Shown piece by piece: positions 11,529 through 27,661 of a stretch of 64,000 nucleotides of DNA. Every line of letters begins with the position of its first letter. Position 1 is the stretch's first letter. The notes below the pieces were generated by a model, which searched no databases, was not told the DNA's origin, and was given only the letters and a program-made list of their open reading frames with translations. Both the position numbers and the translations under genes were made by a program. The stretch spans positions 1 to 64,000 of the IMG/VR virus record IMGVR_UViG_3300017991_005548; one strand, given 5' to 3'.

Positions 11529-11562
11529 AAAAAAACCCGAAGTCTTTATCGGACTTCGGGTT
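11529..11562 (-). terminator. Attenuator terminator upstream of the Thr/Lys tRNA genes
   Basis: 9-bp stem CCCGAAGTC/GACTTCGGG, 7-nt loop, U7 tract ending 8 nt before tRNA-Thr(GGU). Confidence 0.9.
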
Positions 11563-11584
11563 GGTCAGTATCTTTACGTTCAGG

Positions 11585-11662
11585 TCAAGACAACAAACCT
11601 CCCGAAGCCACGCGTTTCTTCGTGGTTTTGGTTGTTTTAGTTGTCTTGGTTGTAGCGTACAT
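11585..11662 (-). CDS. Thr/Lys-rich attenuator leader peptide MYATTKTTKTTKTTKKRVASGGLLS (25 aa)
   Basis: AAGGA SD upstream; 13 consecutive Thr/Lys codons; contains antiterminator segment GCTTCGGG (11601-11608) complementary to the terminator 5' arm. Confidence 0.85.
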   Translation of the reverse strand: MYATTKTTKTTKTTKKRVASGGLLS

Positions 11663-11734
11663 TTTTAAAATTCCTTATCTTCATTTAATTGAAGTTTATG
11701 AGCATTGTTCATTAAACTCGCTCAAGTTACCCCT

Positions 11735-11762
11735 ATTATAAGCTATGTTTGGAGCTTTTCAA
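11735..11762 (-). promoter_or_regulatory. sigma70-type promoter of the Thr/Lys tRNA operon
   Basis: TTGAAA-N16-TATAAT followed by AGGGGTAAC. Confidence 0.75.
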
Positions 11763-24097: not shown

Positions 24098-25516
24098 TTA
24101 AACTGCTCCACCATCATAAACTGCTCCCCATTCTGATCCAATTGCAGTTCTCCCTGCTTCAGCGGCACCTCCCGCAGTGTATTTACTGTTGCCGAACGTT
24201 GGGATTCCTGCGGCAGGTTTTAACGATTGACCTCCCCATGAAATCAGAAGTGCATCATAGTTAGCAGTAGACAGGGCATCGTAAGGAGTGCCACGAGCTA
24301 TTTCTGCCATGAACTCATGTATTACTGTGACGTTAGAAACATCCCAGTTGCTGAGGTCTTGGTCAAAATTAGGTTGGAACCTAATGGCTTGTTGAATATC
24401 AGTAACGCTTGATGTATCCCACACCCCTATCGGCTGATTGAATACGCCTCTACTGGCTAAAGTTGCACCTAGCATATTTGCCAGTGTTGTCACGTTACCC
24501 ATGTTTGTAAAGTTTTGGATCGCGCCATTGAATAAAGGACAAGTATTAAACATACCTGAGCAGTCAGTGACACTATTCATGTCCCAGTTCCAATTTGCGC
24601 TTGCGCCTGTCATTCCAGTACATCCTGCGAACATCCATGAACAATCCGAACACGCCGACAAATCAGGCACATCAGATGCGGTGATTTCAAGGCCACTACA
24701 ACTCGAAAATGCGTTAGCCATCTGAGGCCACTGATACGTTCCCCACTGTCGAATTTCTTTGAGCTTTGATGCATATCCCCATCCTGAAATCCAACCAGAA
24801 GAAGAAGAGAAGTCAACAGACATTTCATACTCGGTATCTGCGTCAGGATAGATATGTTCGATTATAAATCCACCAGTAACCGTTTGTTGGTTTCCATCAC
24901 CCCAATCAATATATGTTGTGTTAGGGTTACCTATGTAAATTTGAACTGTTTTATTCTCTCCTGAATCCCACAATGCTTTAAAAAGATCACCCTCAGGGTA
25001 AGAACTGCTTGACGAACTTGAAGTTGAACATGGATCATCACAAACCTCTACAACTTGTCCAACCGAATACTTACTTGCCGCACCTGGCTCAACTAAAGAA
25101 ATACCAATCCAAAGACCAACATTTATCTCTCCAATATCATTTCCATTTACACAAACAAAACCTGAAAAAGTATTTAATGGAGAAGTTGATTCAAAGCCTA
25201 ATACATTTCCTACAATGGTTAATATTGAAACAGTGGCACAACCTTCTGAACTTGATGAAGAAACATTTTCTTCACTTTCTGAAGAATTGGAACTAGAAGA
25301 ACTGCTAACATTACCAATTGATTCAGAAGATGATGATTGAGTACTTTCTGATGAACTTGATTCAATAGCACATTCGAGACAATTATCAAAAACTTCTTCT
25401 ATTTCGCTTGGGCTTGAATTAACAGAACTAGTTGTTTCACCGATCCATTTATAACAAACCCCACCTATTTTAATTGATGCTCCTTGATAATCGTCAAATA
25501 TTTTTTCTCTACCCAT
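24098..25516 (-). CDS. Cys-module + poly-Ser + PKD-like + BspA/DUF285 leucine-rich repeat protein
   Basis: YIDWGDG; FNQPIGVWDTSSVT, FDQDLSNWDVSNVT repeats; LSTANYDALLISW. Confidence 0.8.
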   Translation of the reverse strand: MGREKIFDDYQGASIKIGGVCYKWIGETTSSVNSSPSEIEEVFDNCLECAIESSSSESTQSSSSESIGNVSSSSSSNSSESEENVSSSSSEGCATVSILTIVGNVLGFESTSPLNTFSGFVCVNGNDIGEINVGLWIGISLVEPGAASKYSVGQVVEVCDDPCSTSSSSSSSYPEGDLFKALWDSGENKTVQIYIGNPNTTYIDWGDGNQQTVTGGFIIEHIYPDADTEYEMSVDFSSSSGWISGWGYASKLKEIRQWGTYQWPQMANAFSSCSGLEITASDVPDLSACSDCSWMFAGCTGMTGASANWNWDMNSVTDCSGMFNTCPLFNGAIQNFTNMGNVTTLANMLGATLASRGVFNQPIGVWDTSSVTDIQQAIRFQPNFDQDLSNWDVSNVTVIHEFMAEIARGTPYDALSTANYDALLISWGGQSLKPAAGIPTFGNSKYTAGGAAEAGRTAIGSEWGAVYDGGAV

Positions 25517-25591
25517 AAAAAATCTCTCTAGATAATATTGATAAATAGTTCAATATATATATCTGAGAAACCTTTGGAAAAATAGAGAGTT

Positions 25592-25673
25592 TGGTATGGG
25601 GGGTGGGACTTGAACCCACAGAAATTCACTTGTTTATAAGACAAGCCGCTTAACCAAATTTGCGTACCCCCAC
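25592..25673 (-). tRNA. tRNA-Ile(UAU)
   Basis: CTTGT-CTTATAA-ACAAG anticodon arm; GTGGG-TTCAAGT-CCCAC; ACCA end; 9-nt variable region. Confidence 0.8.
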
Positions 25674-25689
25674 ACAGGTAAGAAGTTTT

Positions 25690-25796
25690 GGGGAGGTGGG
25701 GAGGCTCACTGGGGTAAGTGGCTTCTTATTATATTGCCGTCCATTGTGTCAGCCCGTTCTCCTTCTAACGGGTGTTTCCGATGACATGGCATCCCC
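25690..25796 (-). ncRNA. GC-rich structured RNA of unknown class inside the tRNA operon
   Basis: Nested pairings GGGGA/TCCCC, CCAT/ATGG, TGTCA/TGACA, CCCGTT/AACGGG; abuts tRNA-Val. Confidence 0.5.
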
Positions 25797-25798
25797 TT

Positions 25799-25875
25799 TG
25801 GTGGGCAGTACAGGACTCGAACCTGTCACGACCTCGGTGTAAACGAGGCATTCTAGCCAAATGAATTAACTGCCC
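25799..25875 (-). tRNA. tRNA-Val(UAC)
   Basis: CCTCG-TTTACAC-CGAGG; ACCA end. Confidence 0.9.
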
Positions 25876-25939
25876 AGTAAAATCATATTCGAAATACTTC
25901 TTTCATATTATAACCTAAATTTCCTTTAGTTCAACAAAC

Positions 25940-26019
25940 AAGCTGATTTATTTTTTGAAGGGTTTGAACCTTCTAGATGGTGTAAGCATCGTTAACCTGT
26001 TTTTTGCTGTAATCAGCCT
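25940..26019 (-). ncRNA. tRNA-mimic RNA with a Val(UAC) anticodon hairpin and a T arm inside a non-acceptor closing helix
   Basis: AGGCTGATT/AATCAGCTT closing stem; GATG-CTTACAC-CATC; GAAGG-TTCAAAC-CCTTC; no CCA. Confidence 0.55.
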
Positions 26020-26026
26020 TTATTTT

Positions 26027-26103
26027 TGGTGGACCTACACGGATTCGAACCGAGATTTCCTCCCTGCCAGAGAGGTGTGTTAGCCATTAGTCACTATAAG
26101 CCC
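26027..26103 (-). tRNA. tRNA-Ala(GGC)
   Basis: G3:U70; CCTCT-CTGGCAG-GGAGG; ACCA end. Confidence 0.85.
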
Positions 26104-26137
26104 TTTTTGTTTCATAACTCGTTGATAATTAACGACT

Positions 26138-26216
26138 TGGTGGAGACGGTCGGAATCGAACCGACCACATGCTGGTTGCAAACCAGTATCGCCAAAGCCT
26201 TGGTACATGCGCCCCC
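26138..26216 (-). tRNA. tRNA-Ala(UGC) with aberrant D arm
   Basis: G3:U70; loop TTTGCAA; canonical T arm; ACCA end; D region CATGTACCAAGGCTTTGGCGAT is non-canonical. Confidence 0.75.
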
Positions 26217-26221
26217 AAGTT

Positions 26222-26443
26222 TTAAACGCCTAATTCGTTATCCTCAAAAAACACAACATCCGAAATCGGTTCTAGTCTTTCGTATGTCTCATTCCATATT
26301 TCAATTTCTTCATCCGTCAATGCAACCTTGTCATTTTTACAGTTCCATCGATCTTTGTCTGGACACCAACAACTGCCTTCTGCATGTATCCATTGTGCCA
26401 TGCATTTCTCAAACATTTTCTTGTAATCTACGTTGTCTTCCAT
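26222..26443 (-). CDS. Small hypothetical protein inside the tRNA operon
   Basis: MEDNVDYKK start after a GGAG SD. Confidence 0.6.
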   Translation of the reverse strand: MEDNVDYKKMFEKCMAQWIHAEGSCWCPDKDRWNCKNDKVALTDEEIEIWNETYERLEPISDVVFFEDNELGV

Positions 26444-26480
26444 CGTCTGTCTCCAGTATCTGGTCATTTATACGGACATC

Positions 26481-26504
26481 ATGGCCACATAAATGGCCAC
26501 ATAA
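26481..26504. repeat. 12-bp tandem duplication (ATGGCCACATAA)x2
   Basis: Seen directly, just 3' of tRNA-Ala(UGC). Confidence 0.8.
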
Positions 26505-26508
26505 GTCT

Positions 26509-26585
26509 TGGTGGAGCATAAGAGACTCGAACTCTTGACATCCTGCTTGCAAAGCAGGTGCTCTAGCCATCTGAGCTAATGCCCC
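26509..26585 (-). tRNA. tRNA-Ala(UGC)
   Basis: Canonical cloverleaf, G3:U70, CCTGC-TTTGCAA-GCAGG, ACCA end. Confidence 0.92.
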
Positions 26586-26646
26586 AAAATACGGGATACC
26601 TAAGCATTGCCCGTTTTTGAATGGATGTCGAAACATTGCCATTCTT

Positions 26647-26739
26647 TGGTGGAGAAGATTGGAGTCGAACCAATTAAAATTGTTTGCCGAAGAGAGCCTT
26701 ATAACAAGCTCAGTTTGCCCTCCGCAGGGCATCTTCTCC
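26647..26739 (-). ncRNA. tRNA-like RNA: intact acceptor stem, T arm and CCA, non-tRNA core
   Basis: GGAGAAG/CTTCTCC-ACCA; ATTGG-TTCGACT-CCAAT; internal hairpins GCCCT/AGGGC and GAGCTT/AGGCTC; no 7-nt anticodon loop. Confidence 0.65.
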
Positions 26740-26776
26740 AGTTGTTTTAGAACTCTGTTCGTTAAAACATCGTTCT

Positions 26777-26853
26777 TGGTAGTTGGGACAGGACTCGAAC
26801 CTGCATCCTCCGATATGTAAAAACGGTGCTCCGCGCAATTAAGCTACCCAACC
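26777..26853 (-). tRNA. tRNA-Val(UAC), divergent
   Basis: Loop TTTACAT; U-U mismatch in the anticodon stem; D loop lacks GG; canonical T arm; ACCA end. Confidence 0.75.
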
Positions 26854-26879
26854 AACAATAATAAATTGTAAAAGATCAC

Positions 26880-26910
26880 AAAAAAAGCCCTGTCATTTCT
26901 GACAGGGCTT
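26880..26910 (-). terminator. Attenuator terminator upstream of the Val/Ala/Ile tRNA genes
   Basis: 9-bp stem GCCCTGTCA-GAAA-TGACAGGGC followed by U7. Confidence 0.9.
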
Positions 26911-26932
26911 AAACCGACTTCTGGAAACTACA

Positions 26933-27019
26933 TCATCCAGAAAGAGCAGAAAAGCCCTGCCCGTCTGCGACTACCGCGACGGCTACTACTGCTATGGCTA
27001 TTTCTACTCTCTTTTTCAT
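26933..27019 (-). CDS. Val/Ala/Ile-rich attenuator leader peptide MKKRVEIAIAVVAVAVVADGQGFSALSG (28 aa)
   Basis: GGAG SD 9 nt upstream; 12 consecutive Ile/Ala/Val codons; contains antiterminator segment GCAGGGCTT (26952-26960). Confidence 0.85.
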   Translation of the reverse strand: MKKRVEIAIAVVAVAVVADGQGFSALSG

Positions 27020-27047
27020 AAAACATATCTCCAGTTACGTTGCCCCT

Positions 27048-27075
27048 ATTATAAGGCATCTATTTGGCTTTTCAA
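27048..27075 (-). promoter_or_regulatory. sigma70-type promoter of the Val/Ala/Ile tRNA operon
   Basis: TTGAAA-N16-TATAAT followed by AGGGGCAAC; near-identical to 11735..11762. Confidence 0.75.
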
Positions 27076-27100
27076 GCTCGAATCGAAAATAAATTCGTCT

Positions 27101-27661
27101 TTATTGAAGAAAAATCAAAAAAAACTCTCTGTGCCTGTTGCAAGCAGATGAAGCGAACTCTTTTATGTTCTCCATATCTTCATTTGAAAGGTGCGAAGCA
27201 CAATCAACAAAGACATATGTTGGCTCCAAACCCAGACCCCAACAGGACCGAGAAGATAAGAGAAAGTGGATATTGAAGCCATCTGCTTCAGTCATTTGAG
27301 GCCACTCAATGTGGTCAATACTATGGTCTCTTAATGTAGCATTGCACATGTTCCTATGAAATTCAAGTTGTCGTGCGTTATGCGAGAACACAGCAGAATC
27401 TACTCTATTTCTAGCAATAAACTCCATAAGTGCAGTTGAATGACCACTTCTTCTTGTTGCCCTAGCATGTACTGTACACCATGAATCAATCCAATTGGGA
27501 TAAGAACTACCACTATCCCAAAATCGCGCTTGGTTTTGACATGTTCTTGAAATGGAAACAAGGGTCTCCAAAGCCCCCAATACCGTATCCTCACAATTTG
27601 AGACGATATTAACGGCTCTGGTTTGCATAGAGTCTAGCTTTACGACTCCGCAATTAGACAT
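27101..27661 (-). CDS. Hypothetical protein, possible degenerate P-loop fold
   Basis: RRSGHST and hhhhD (YVFVD) resemble Walker A/B without the catalytic Lys. Confidence 0.5.
   Translation of the reverse strand: MSNCGVVKLDSMQTRAVNIVSNCEDTVLGALETLVSISRTCQNQARFWDSGSSYPNWIDSWCTVHARATRRSGHSTALMEFIARNRVDSAVFSHNARQLEFHRNMCNATLRDHSIDHIEWPQMTEADGFNIHFLLSSRSCWGLGLEPTYVFVDCASHLSNEDMENIKEFASSACNRHREFFLIFLQ

Follow-up and report, generated by a model that had tools for sequence, protein, structure and literature searches.

The multivalent leader-peptide attenuators of enterobacteria include ilvL (ilvGMEDA), ivbL (ilvBN) and thrL (Thr/Ile), and the pheM leader attenuates pheST, which encodes phenylalanyl-tRNA synthetase. 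As far as is known, bacterial tRNA genes are controlled at their promoters, by stringent and growth-rate control, and we know of no tRNA gene that is controlled by translation of its own codons. Here we analyse an element found in a 64,000-nucleotide stretch of phage DNA (positions 1 to 64,000 of IMG/VR record IMGVR_UViG_3300017991_005548; "the window" below means the whole of this stretch). It lies at 27075-25592 on the minus strand, to which all coordinates given for this module refer, and consists of a short leader rich in Val, Ala and Ile codons, a terminator, and tRNA genes for the same three amino acids. We conclude that it is probably a ribosome-mediated (leader-peptide) transcription attenuator controlling a phage tRNA operon.

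The proposed mechanism closely resembles that of ilvL, ivbL and thrL. In both, codons for two or three amino acids are clustered in a short leader that is translated and precedes a terminator with an overlapping antiterminator; stalling gives read-through, and pairing of segment 1 with segment 2 gives termination when there is no translation. The difference lies in the target. The enterobacterial leaders control biosynthetic enzymes, whereas the phage module is predicted to control the tRNAs that decode the control codons. In addition, it is encoded by a phage, its set of amino acids follows the tRNAs of the operon rather than a pathway, and there is no sequence or Rfam similarity. The pheM/pheST system is alike in that a component of the translation apparatus is attenuated through a leader peptide that senses the charging of tRNA-Phe, and one of the sister modules described below, with the leader FRFF, is a Phe module. 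The product of pheST is however a synthetase, which raises charging, whereas the product of the phage module is tRNA, which would feed back directly on decoding capacity.

T-boxes are likewise tRNA-responsive terminator/antiterminator switches in the leaders of translation-related genes, but they bind uncharged tRNA directly and have no leader open reading frame (ORF), whereas the phage module has both an ORF and a Shine-Dalgarno (SD) site. No T-box was matched in the window at the Rfam gathering thresholds, nor over 25400-27200 at E<=1. The Rfam amino-acid leader families (Thr, His, Leu, Trp and Phe) also gave no match at E<=1 over this range, and only tRNA models pass the gathering thresholds in the window. 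Stringent and growth-rate control also acts on the transcription of tRNA genes, and the G-rich discriminator of the phage promoters resembles that of stringent promoters, but this control operates on initiation, is global, and is specific neither for codons nor for isoacceptors. Finally, T5 and T4 also carry tRNA gene clusters interspersed with small ORFs and homing endonucleases; in T5, however, the annotated promoters run straight into the tRNAs, which lack any grouping by amino acid downstream of matched leaders.

Each hallmark of an attenuator that could be assessed at the level of sequence appears to be present: an ORF with an SD site, a cluster of control codons, a terminator, an antiterminator exclusive with it, and a suitable geometry. 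The novelty is the target, namely phage tRNA genes that decode the control codons, with a leader tailored to each operon. We found no description of leader-peptide attenuation of tRNA genes in the full-text literature, in which subscription journals are poorly covered.

The Val/Ala/Ile leader and its tRNA operon

The features of the module are as follows; tRNAs were called by ARAGORN and Rfam, and both programs agree except where indicated.

27043-27075, minus: promoter, with -35 TTGAAA (27075-27070), a 16-nt spacer, -10 TATAAT (27053-27048) and the G-rich discriminator AGGGG
27029-27032, minus: SD site GGAG, 9 nt ahead of the ATG
26933-27019, minus: leader ORF of 28 codons plus TGA, with the core run VEIAIAVVAVAVVA
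26966-27007, minus: control-codon run (codons 5-18), GTA x4, GTC x2, GCC x2, GCA x2, GCG x1, ATA x2 and one GAA
26996-27012, minus: segment 1 (codons 3-8), paired with 26956-26941 in the minimum free energy fold of the untranslated leader
26952-26961, minus: segment 2, the putative antiterminator GGCAGGGCUU, a near-copy of the terminator 3' arm, with its partner at 26910-26901
26942-26936 / 26925-26919, minus: small hairpin TTCTGGA/TCCAGAA, spanning the stop codon within the antiterminator loop
26880-26910, minus: intrinsic terminator (segments 3 and 4), with an 11-bp stem (26910-26900 / 26895-26885), GAAA loop and U7
26777-26853, minus: tRNA-Val(UAC)
26647-26741, minus: odd tRNA-like element, folding as a cloverleaf whose anticodon loop is enlarged and whose variable arm is long
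26509-26585, minus: tRNA-Ala(UGC)
26138-26216, minus: second tRNA-Ala(UGC)-like gene, with G3:U70 present and an aberrant D arm, called only at relaxed ARAGORN settings
26027-26103, minus: tRNA-Ala(GGC)
25799-25875, minus: second copy of tRNA-Val(UAC)
25592-25673, minus: tRNA-Ile(UAU), the reader of AUA

The promoter is of the sigma-70 type, matches the consensus at 11 of 12 positions, and has the top score within 24-29 kb. SD-like motifs precede about 60% of the long ORFs in the window, and the three sister leaders described below have AAGGA 10-11 nt 5' of the ATG. There is also a competing reading frame, whose ATG lies just 2 nt past the SD site.

Within codons 5-18, all but one of the 14 codons specify Val, Ala or Ile, the remaining one being Glu, and these three amino acids make up 14 of the 27 residues of the leader peptide. 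With standard wobble, the anticodons of the operon cover 12 of these 14 Val/Ala/Ile codons. The best 10-codon stretch of the leader contains nine such decodable codons, compared to a maximum of seven among the 836 other short ORFs of the window. The choice of synonymous codons also favours those readable by the tRNAs of the operon: the leader contains neither GTT nor ATT, as against 55% of Val codons (GTT) and 51% of Ile codons (ATT) in the genes of the window.

The sequence GCAGGGCTT (26960-26952) is complementary to the 5' arm of the terminator, and inclusion of one G:U pair extends the helix to 10 bp. The calculated energy of this pairing is -18.1 kcal/mol, compared to -19.0 kcal/mol for the terminator itself, and only one of 500 shuffled sequences did equally well. 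The best upstream partner of the terminator 5' arm thus sits right behind the control codons. The leader RNA as a whole has a predicted fold of -63.2 kcal/mol (z = -5.9 compared to shuffled sequences). Pairing of segment 1 sequesters segment 2, so that an untranslated leader would terminate by default. The spacer between the terminator and the first tRNA is just 26 nt long, with no promoter-like site reported inside it. This is too short for a promoter, and the tRNAs must therefore be reached by read-through.

The switch was modelled as a co-transcriptional (kinetic) process: transcripts truncated at the terminator loop were folded, and a ribosome was represented by a mask reaching 13 nt past its A site. 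With a ribosome stalled at any of codons 2-16, the terminator 5' arm is captured by segment 2; with no ribosome it is free; and with the ribosome at codon 19 or later it is again unpaired from segment 2. The model thus supports the switch behaviour expected of an attenuator.

On the basis of these observations, the following mechanism may be proposed. Host RNA polymerase would initiate at the sigma-70-type promoter, and a ribosome would translate the 28-codon leader. When Val, Ala and Ile(AUA) codons are decoded rapidly, or when the leader is not translated, segment 2 would be covered by the ribosome or paired with segment 1; the 11-bp/U7 terminator would then form, and transcription would end 26 nt short of the first tRNA. 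When decoding capacity is low, the ribosome would stall within codons 5-16, allowing segment 2 (GGCAGGGCUU) to pair with the terminator 5' arm, and polymerase would read through into Val(UAC), two Ala(UGC), Ala(GGC), Val(UAC) and Ile(UAU). The result would be a negative-feedback circuit in which the supply of tRNA is driven by demand. The tRNAs of the operon decode the test codons, and read-through would therefore be self-limiting and the supply homeostatic.

The original prediction for this locus, which was made from the DNA alone, was confirmed throughout. The promoter hexamers (27075-27048), the GGAG site with its ORF at 27019-26933, every one of the codon counts, and the terminator at 26910-26880 with its GAAA loop and U7 were all found where it placed them, as was the TTCTGGA/TCCAGAA hairpin at the stop codon. 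The 9-bp pairing that it proposed between 26960-26952 and the terminator 5' arm proved to be one base pair longer when G:U is allowed. It had noted that no GAC tRNA is present for GTC, and the two GTC codons indeed remain unmatched. Its list of six tRNAs needs qualification, in that five are called normally and the second Ala(UGC) only at relaxed settings, and it had overlooked the odd element at 26741-26647. It had also proposed that AUA codons are matched by their own isoacceptor. The codon choice bears this out to the extent that ATA occurs twice and GTA four times, with no ATT or GTT, against genome usage; isoacceptor-specific matching of leader codons to tRNAs may be considered moderately supported overall. 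Its interpretation as an attenuator agrees at each point with the anatomy described here.

Some further features of the operon are worth recording. For the second Ala(UGC) gene (26216-26138), the sole Rfam alignment is to the ends of the tmRNA model. The odd element (26741-26647, minus strand) is one of a group of tRNA-like cloverleaves with an encoded CCA and abnormal anticodon regions, others being found outside the window at L004 13365-13250 and 12875-12745 (minus strand). In one, the loop measures 8 nt (UGUUAUAA) and the variable arm is long, while the others have inserts of 50-60 nt; all score below tRNA thresholds, and ARAGORN calls them as intron-bearing only. The two Ala(UGC) genes of the operon are separated by an ORF of 81 amino acids (26467-26222, minus strand), for which Pfam gave no match.

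Sister modules and unrelated phages

The window is part of a phage genome of approximately 524 kb, in which four modules were found, one ahead of each of the four tRNA clusters detected and all with a common promoter:

11529-11762, minus: Thr/Lys module, with promoter 11762-11730, leader ORF 11662-11585 containing the run TTKTTKTTKTTKK (TTKTTK...), antiterminator 11609-11601 and terminator 11562-11529
11520-9997, minus: tRNAs of the Thr/Lys module, Thr(GGU), Thr(CGU), Thr(UGU), Lys(UUU), Lys(CUU) and Lys(UUU)
27075-25592, minus: Val/Ala/Ile module, with the run VEIAIAVVAVAVVA (VEIAIAVV...)
Just beyond the window end: Phe module, with leader FRFF and two Phe(GAA)
Outside the window: Glu/Pro module, with leader EPEREEPP and Glu(UUC) x2, Glu(CUC), Pro(UGG) x2 and Pro(GGG)

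There are two copies of the extended promoter motif, TTGAAAAGC-N13-TATAATAGGGG, in the window, where zero are expected by chance, and each stands before a tRNA cluster. A slightly relaxed form of the pattern has four copies, and no others, in a 476-kb IMG/VR contig that spans most of the genome. Behind each of these copies come an SD site, then a short ORF, one or two terminators, and finally tRNAs. All four also have a G-rich discriminator (AGGGG or GGGGG) after the -10 hexamer (in the window at 27043-27048 and 11730-11735, minus strand), which recalls the stringently controlled promoters of rRNA and tRNA genes.

In all four modules the best partner of the terminator 5' arm lies directly behind the control codons, with pairing energies of -13.6 to -20.2 kcal/mol that were equalled by at most one of 500 shuffles. 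Moreover, when the terminator arms of the four modules were compared with 13 leaders, the top partner was in each case the module's own leader, a result equalled by none of 20,000 random pairings. At the level of predicted helices, this own-leader pairing amounts to compensatory change between paralogous modules.

Both the Phe and the Glu/Pro module (L004 8161-7959 and 13822-13594, minus strand, outside the window) have tandem terminators, of which the second could pair through its 5' arm with the 3' arm of the first (-15.5 and -15.2 kcal/mol). A single stall could thus open both, in domino fashion. This suggests a six-segment "domino" attenuator in these two modules. The last tRNA of the Thr/Lys module is directly followed by a hairpin and U run, which we interpret as a terminator. 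An ORF of 291 amino acids among the Lys tRNA genes (window 10962-10087, minus strand) contains DUF559/Vsr-like endonuclease and helix-turn-helix domains, and looks like a homing endonuclease.

The same design is found in three unrelated phages, which together contain eleven further modules. The first is LR745206.1, an uncultured AT-rich phage of 634 kb with Bacteroidota-type TAnnTTTG promoters (six modules); the others are both cultured, namely Cellulophaga phage phi4:1, whose host is Cellulophaga baltica (three modules), and Tunturiibacter phage Tunturi_5, which has an Acidobacteriota host (two modules). For these phages, the scan retained the best-matching small ORF 5' of a terminator. The leaders and the tRNAs that follow them are:

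LR745206.1: YESYYEE, followed by Glu/Tyr
LR745206.1: ISIAVIGNGAGAI, followed by Ile(UAU)/Gly/Met
LR745206.1: HK.F.K.HKWF, followed by His/Phe/Trp/Lys
LR745206.1: SKSSSRSSS, followed by Arg/Ser
LR745206.1: PVNPQPQDQDP, followed by Pro/Asp/Gln
LR745206.1: a long N/L/T/M/V/I/R leader, followed by a 19-tRNA array for those amino acids
phi4:1: QRLHLQELEQP, followed by Pro/Glu/Gln/His/Leu/Leu/Arg
phi4:1: TKTGITVIDKTKGARA, followed by Ala/Lys/Ile/Gly/Met/Asp/Thr/Val/Arg
phi4:1: NY.TYNNSNWSFSY, followed by Tyr/Ser/Asn/Trp/Phe
Tunturi_5: a Q/H/T/F/A/P/G-rich leader, followed by Gln, Gly, Thr, Pro, His, Ala and Phe
Tunturi_5: a D/R/K/V/W/E/M-rich leader, followed by Trp, Asp, Met, Lys, Val, Arg and Glu

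In a test of six modules, the true pairing of leaders with tRNA sets was the best of 720 permutations. With all 15 modules, a leader's own tRNA set ranked first of 15 in 13 cases, the Val/Ala/Ile leader among them, and second in the other two, and the observed matching score was reached by none of 100,000 random pairings. In every one of the 15, the stall-competent zone ends at, or within about 3 codons of, the end of the main run of cognate codons. The original prediction had argued, from a second leader with different amino acids, that two independent instances of the mechanism make coincidence unlikely. With four clusters out of four in this phage and eleven modules in three unrelated phages, the argument now carries far more weight than its author could have known.

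Applied to the tRNA regions of five other tRNA-rich phages (T5, XacN1, Milchi, RpAliso and pEp_SNUABM_01), the same scan for an ORF, a terminator and tRNAs gave no module. The design is thus lineage-specific, and not a default product of the scan. Two candidates were rejected. One was a promoter-pattern match beside a tRNA-Arg on a 232-kb contig (L019), where the leader ORF is absent; the other was gp076 of phi4:1 as a leader, the actual third module being upstream of tRNA-Tyr. The second phi4:1 leader falls within the gene annotated as gp075. Between Cellulophaga phage phi17:2 and phi4:1, leader 1 shows a single substitution, from which nothing can be concluded. The second operon of phi17:2 has no annotated tRNA-Lys and its leader still has Lys codons, a small exception, within a pair of very close relatives, to the tracking of tRNAs by leaders.

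The N-termini of some leaders are nearly identical across unrelated phages, namely MNNLNNI in the window phage (L004 8108 onward, minus strand) and MKNLNNI in LR745206.1 (L012 5009 onward), and other leader starts are likewise A-rich (MKTIN, MNTITN). This may reflect common descent or a shared constraint on initiation.

Weighing the proposed attenuator against other explanations

The sequences themselves show which parts are present and in what order they lie, that the pairings exclude one another, where the switch is placed, and that leader and tRNAs match in 15 modules. From this we infer the function: that the leader is translated, that the ribosome slows when matching tRNAs are scarce, and that termination efficiency changes to match.

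Several observations weigh against this reading. That the function is deduced in this way is itself one of them. When the full-length transcript of this leader was folded at equilibrium with a ribosome mask, the terminator was kept at every stall position, and the switch is seen in the truncated-transcript model alone; in classical attenuators the choice is kinetic, and such a win for the terminator at equilibrium would also be expected. The two GTC codons have no matching tRNA, and the non-cognate Lys, Arg and Glu codons at positions 2-4 and 6 also lie inside the stall-competent zone. A promoter-like site (25934-25907, minus strand; TTGAAC-16-TATAAT, 10/12) falls in the gap that separates Ala(GGC) from the second Val(UAC), and the last Val gene and Ile(UAU) could be transcribed from it independently of the attenuator. 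In the collections covered, every further copy found of the window-phage modules is identical, giving no diverged orthologues for helix covariation; orthologue covariation was therefore dropped, and the cross-module tests described above were used in its place. Retention of the best-matching ORF favours agreement between leader and tRNAs in the eleven outside modules, which is a mild selection bias. Finally, where the shortage is of the amino acid and not of the tRNA, extra tRNA would be no help, and the physiological signal is thus uncertain. The trigger could be a mismatch in codon usage, decay of the host tRNA pool, or a tRNA-cleaving defence.

In a first alternative, the mechanism is the same and the signal is amino-acid starvation, sensed through uncharged tRNA, with the tRNA operon as a bystander or with downstream protein genes as the main target. 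Leader attenuators such as those of trp, his and ilv are blind to the difference between a lack of tRNA and a lack of charging. Furthermore, the operon contains the 81-residue ORF, and there is no strong terminator between Ile(UAU) and the next gene, at 25516. Against this, the genes that directly follow the leader are anticodon-matched tRNAs in all 15 modules, the Thr/Lys module is closed by its hairpin and U run right after the last tRNA, and to make tRNA is no useful answer to a lack of amino acid. We therefore consider this explanation unlikely.

It is also conceivable that the leader senses translation without regard to codons, responding to general translation capacity or to the coupling of transcription and translation, and that its amino-acid bias has some other cause. 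The stall-competent zone does open at codon 2 and so takes in the non-cognate Lys, Arg and Glu codons, and the four modules share one promoter whose G-rich discriminator is like that of stringent promoters. Such a sensor would however leave unexplained why each of 15 leaders favours just those amino acids that its downstream tRNAs carry, why the cognate run and the stall zone end together, and why the commonest synonymous codons are avoided. This makes it distinctly improbable.

A third explanation takes the ORF for the gene of a small hydrophobic peptide with a function of its own, be it a signal peptide, a membrane anchor or something akin to a type I toxin; the hairpin would then be its terminator, and the match to the tRNAs incidental. 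The peptide has a basic N-terminus, KKR, followed by a hydrophobic run of 13 residues, IAIAVVAVAVVA, and small ORFs are frequent between phage tRNA genes, for example in T5. But the sister leaders behind the same promoter are hydrophilic (TTKTTKTTK, EPEREEPP) or read FRFF, each matching its own tRNAs; the terminator would separate the tRNAs from their only promoter, and the antiterminator copy of the terminator arm would be left without a role. There is very little chance that this explanation is right.

A chance arrangement of an unrelated short ORF and a leaky terminator upstream of tRNAs can practically be dismissed: although short ORFs and hairpins are common, and the region has four terminator-like sites compared to 3.4 expected, none of the 836 background ORFs, and none of the 100,000 random pairings of the 15 modules, gives an equal match, all four clusters of this phage are arranged in the same way, and the promoter motif has an expectation of zero.

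An attenuator that responds to the decoding of its own control codons therefore remains the explanation that we prefer.

Genome setting and implications

The contigs that match the window measure 476, 296, 523.9 and 524.7 kb. The window has 37.8% GC, uses all three stop codons (TAA, TAG and TGA), and is spanned to 81% by long ORFs on the minus strand alone. The region has no close relatives among 50,697 deposited phage genomes, where near and distant DNA searches matched only tRNAs. Scans of IMG/VR with two specific promoter patterns gave just two contigs, both from the same phage, and a broader pattern added only chance matches. Searches with flanking proteins against IMG/VR, JGI metagenomes and a set of 5.8 billion proteins found nothing beyond this same phage. 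In the other copies (L051-L053) the modules are identical to those of the window phage, and L052 is also identical across 8 kb of flank.

A homologue of the translation initiation factor IF3 is encoded about 7 kb past the window end (L051 8974-9486, plus strand), where it adjoins the Glu/Pro tRNA module. Among the matches, its closest cellular relatives are from Planctomycetota (Phycisphaeraceae), with 35-44% identity. This points weakly to a GC-rich host, where tRNAs for A-ending codons would be scarce. The phage tRNAs mostly read A-ending codons (AUA, GUA, GCA, ACA, AAA, GAA and CCA), which the phage uses heavily.

Elsewhere in the window there are six tandem paralogous ORFs of approximately 300 amino acids (20104-14524, minus strand), with a Laminin_G_3 (concanavalin-like lectin) domain in two of the three scanned. 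The many ORFs that run along 52300-30900 (minus strand) include sugar-modification genes, which account for four of the six scanned (glycosyltransferase families 1 and 2, a NeuB-like sialic-acid synthase and a methyltransferase).

The modules appear to form a widespread and undescribed class. They provide a simple rule for locating the boundaries of tRNA operons in the genomes of phages. They may also serve as compact, natural sensors of the codon-specific speed of translation and be reused as reporters. The proposal is testable: modules are carried by two phages that are in culture with their hosts, phi4:1 on Cellulophaga baltica and Tunturi_5 on Tunturiibacter, and the modules of the window phage have an ordinary sigma-70 promoter and SD site, and should therefore be assayable in a laboratory strain.

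We tentatively put forward a broader hypothesis, which is possible although the odds are at present somewhat against it: that large phages of several phyla carry undescribed closed-loop "decoding meters", each with a test peptide written in the codons of its own tRNAs that switches the operon on when decoding capacity falls, and that the supply of phage tRNA is an inducible circuit for translation autonomy or counter-defence. The fall in decoding could be caused by host shut-off, by codon mismatch with a GC-rich host, or by cleavage of host tRNAs by anticodon nucleases. This bears on the role of phage tRNAs, whether in compensating for codon usage, in replacing a decaying host pool, or in escaping tRNA-cleaving defences. 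If the modules are functional, large phages would do more than merely carry tRNAs: they would meter decoding capacity for each codon family and top it up on demand.

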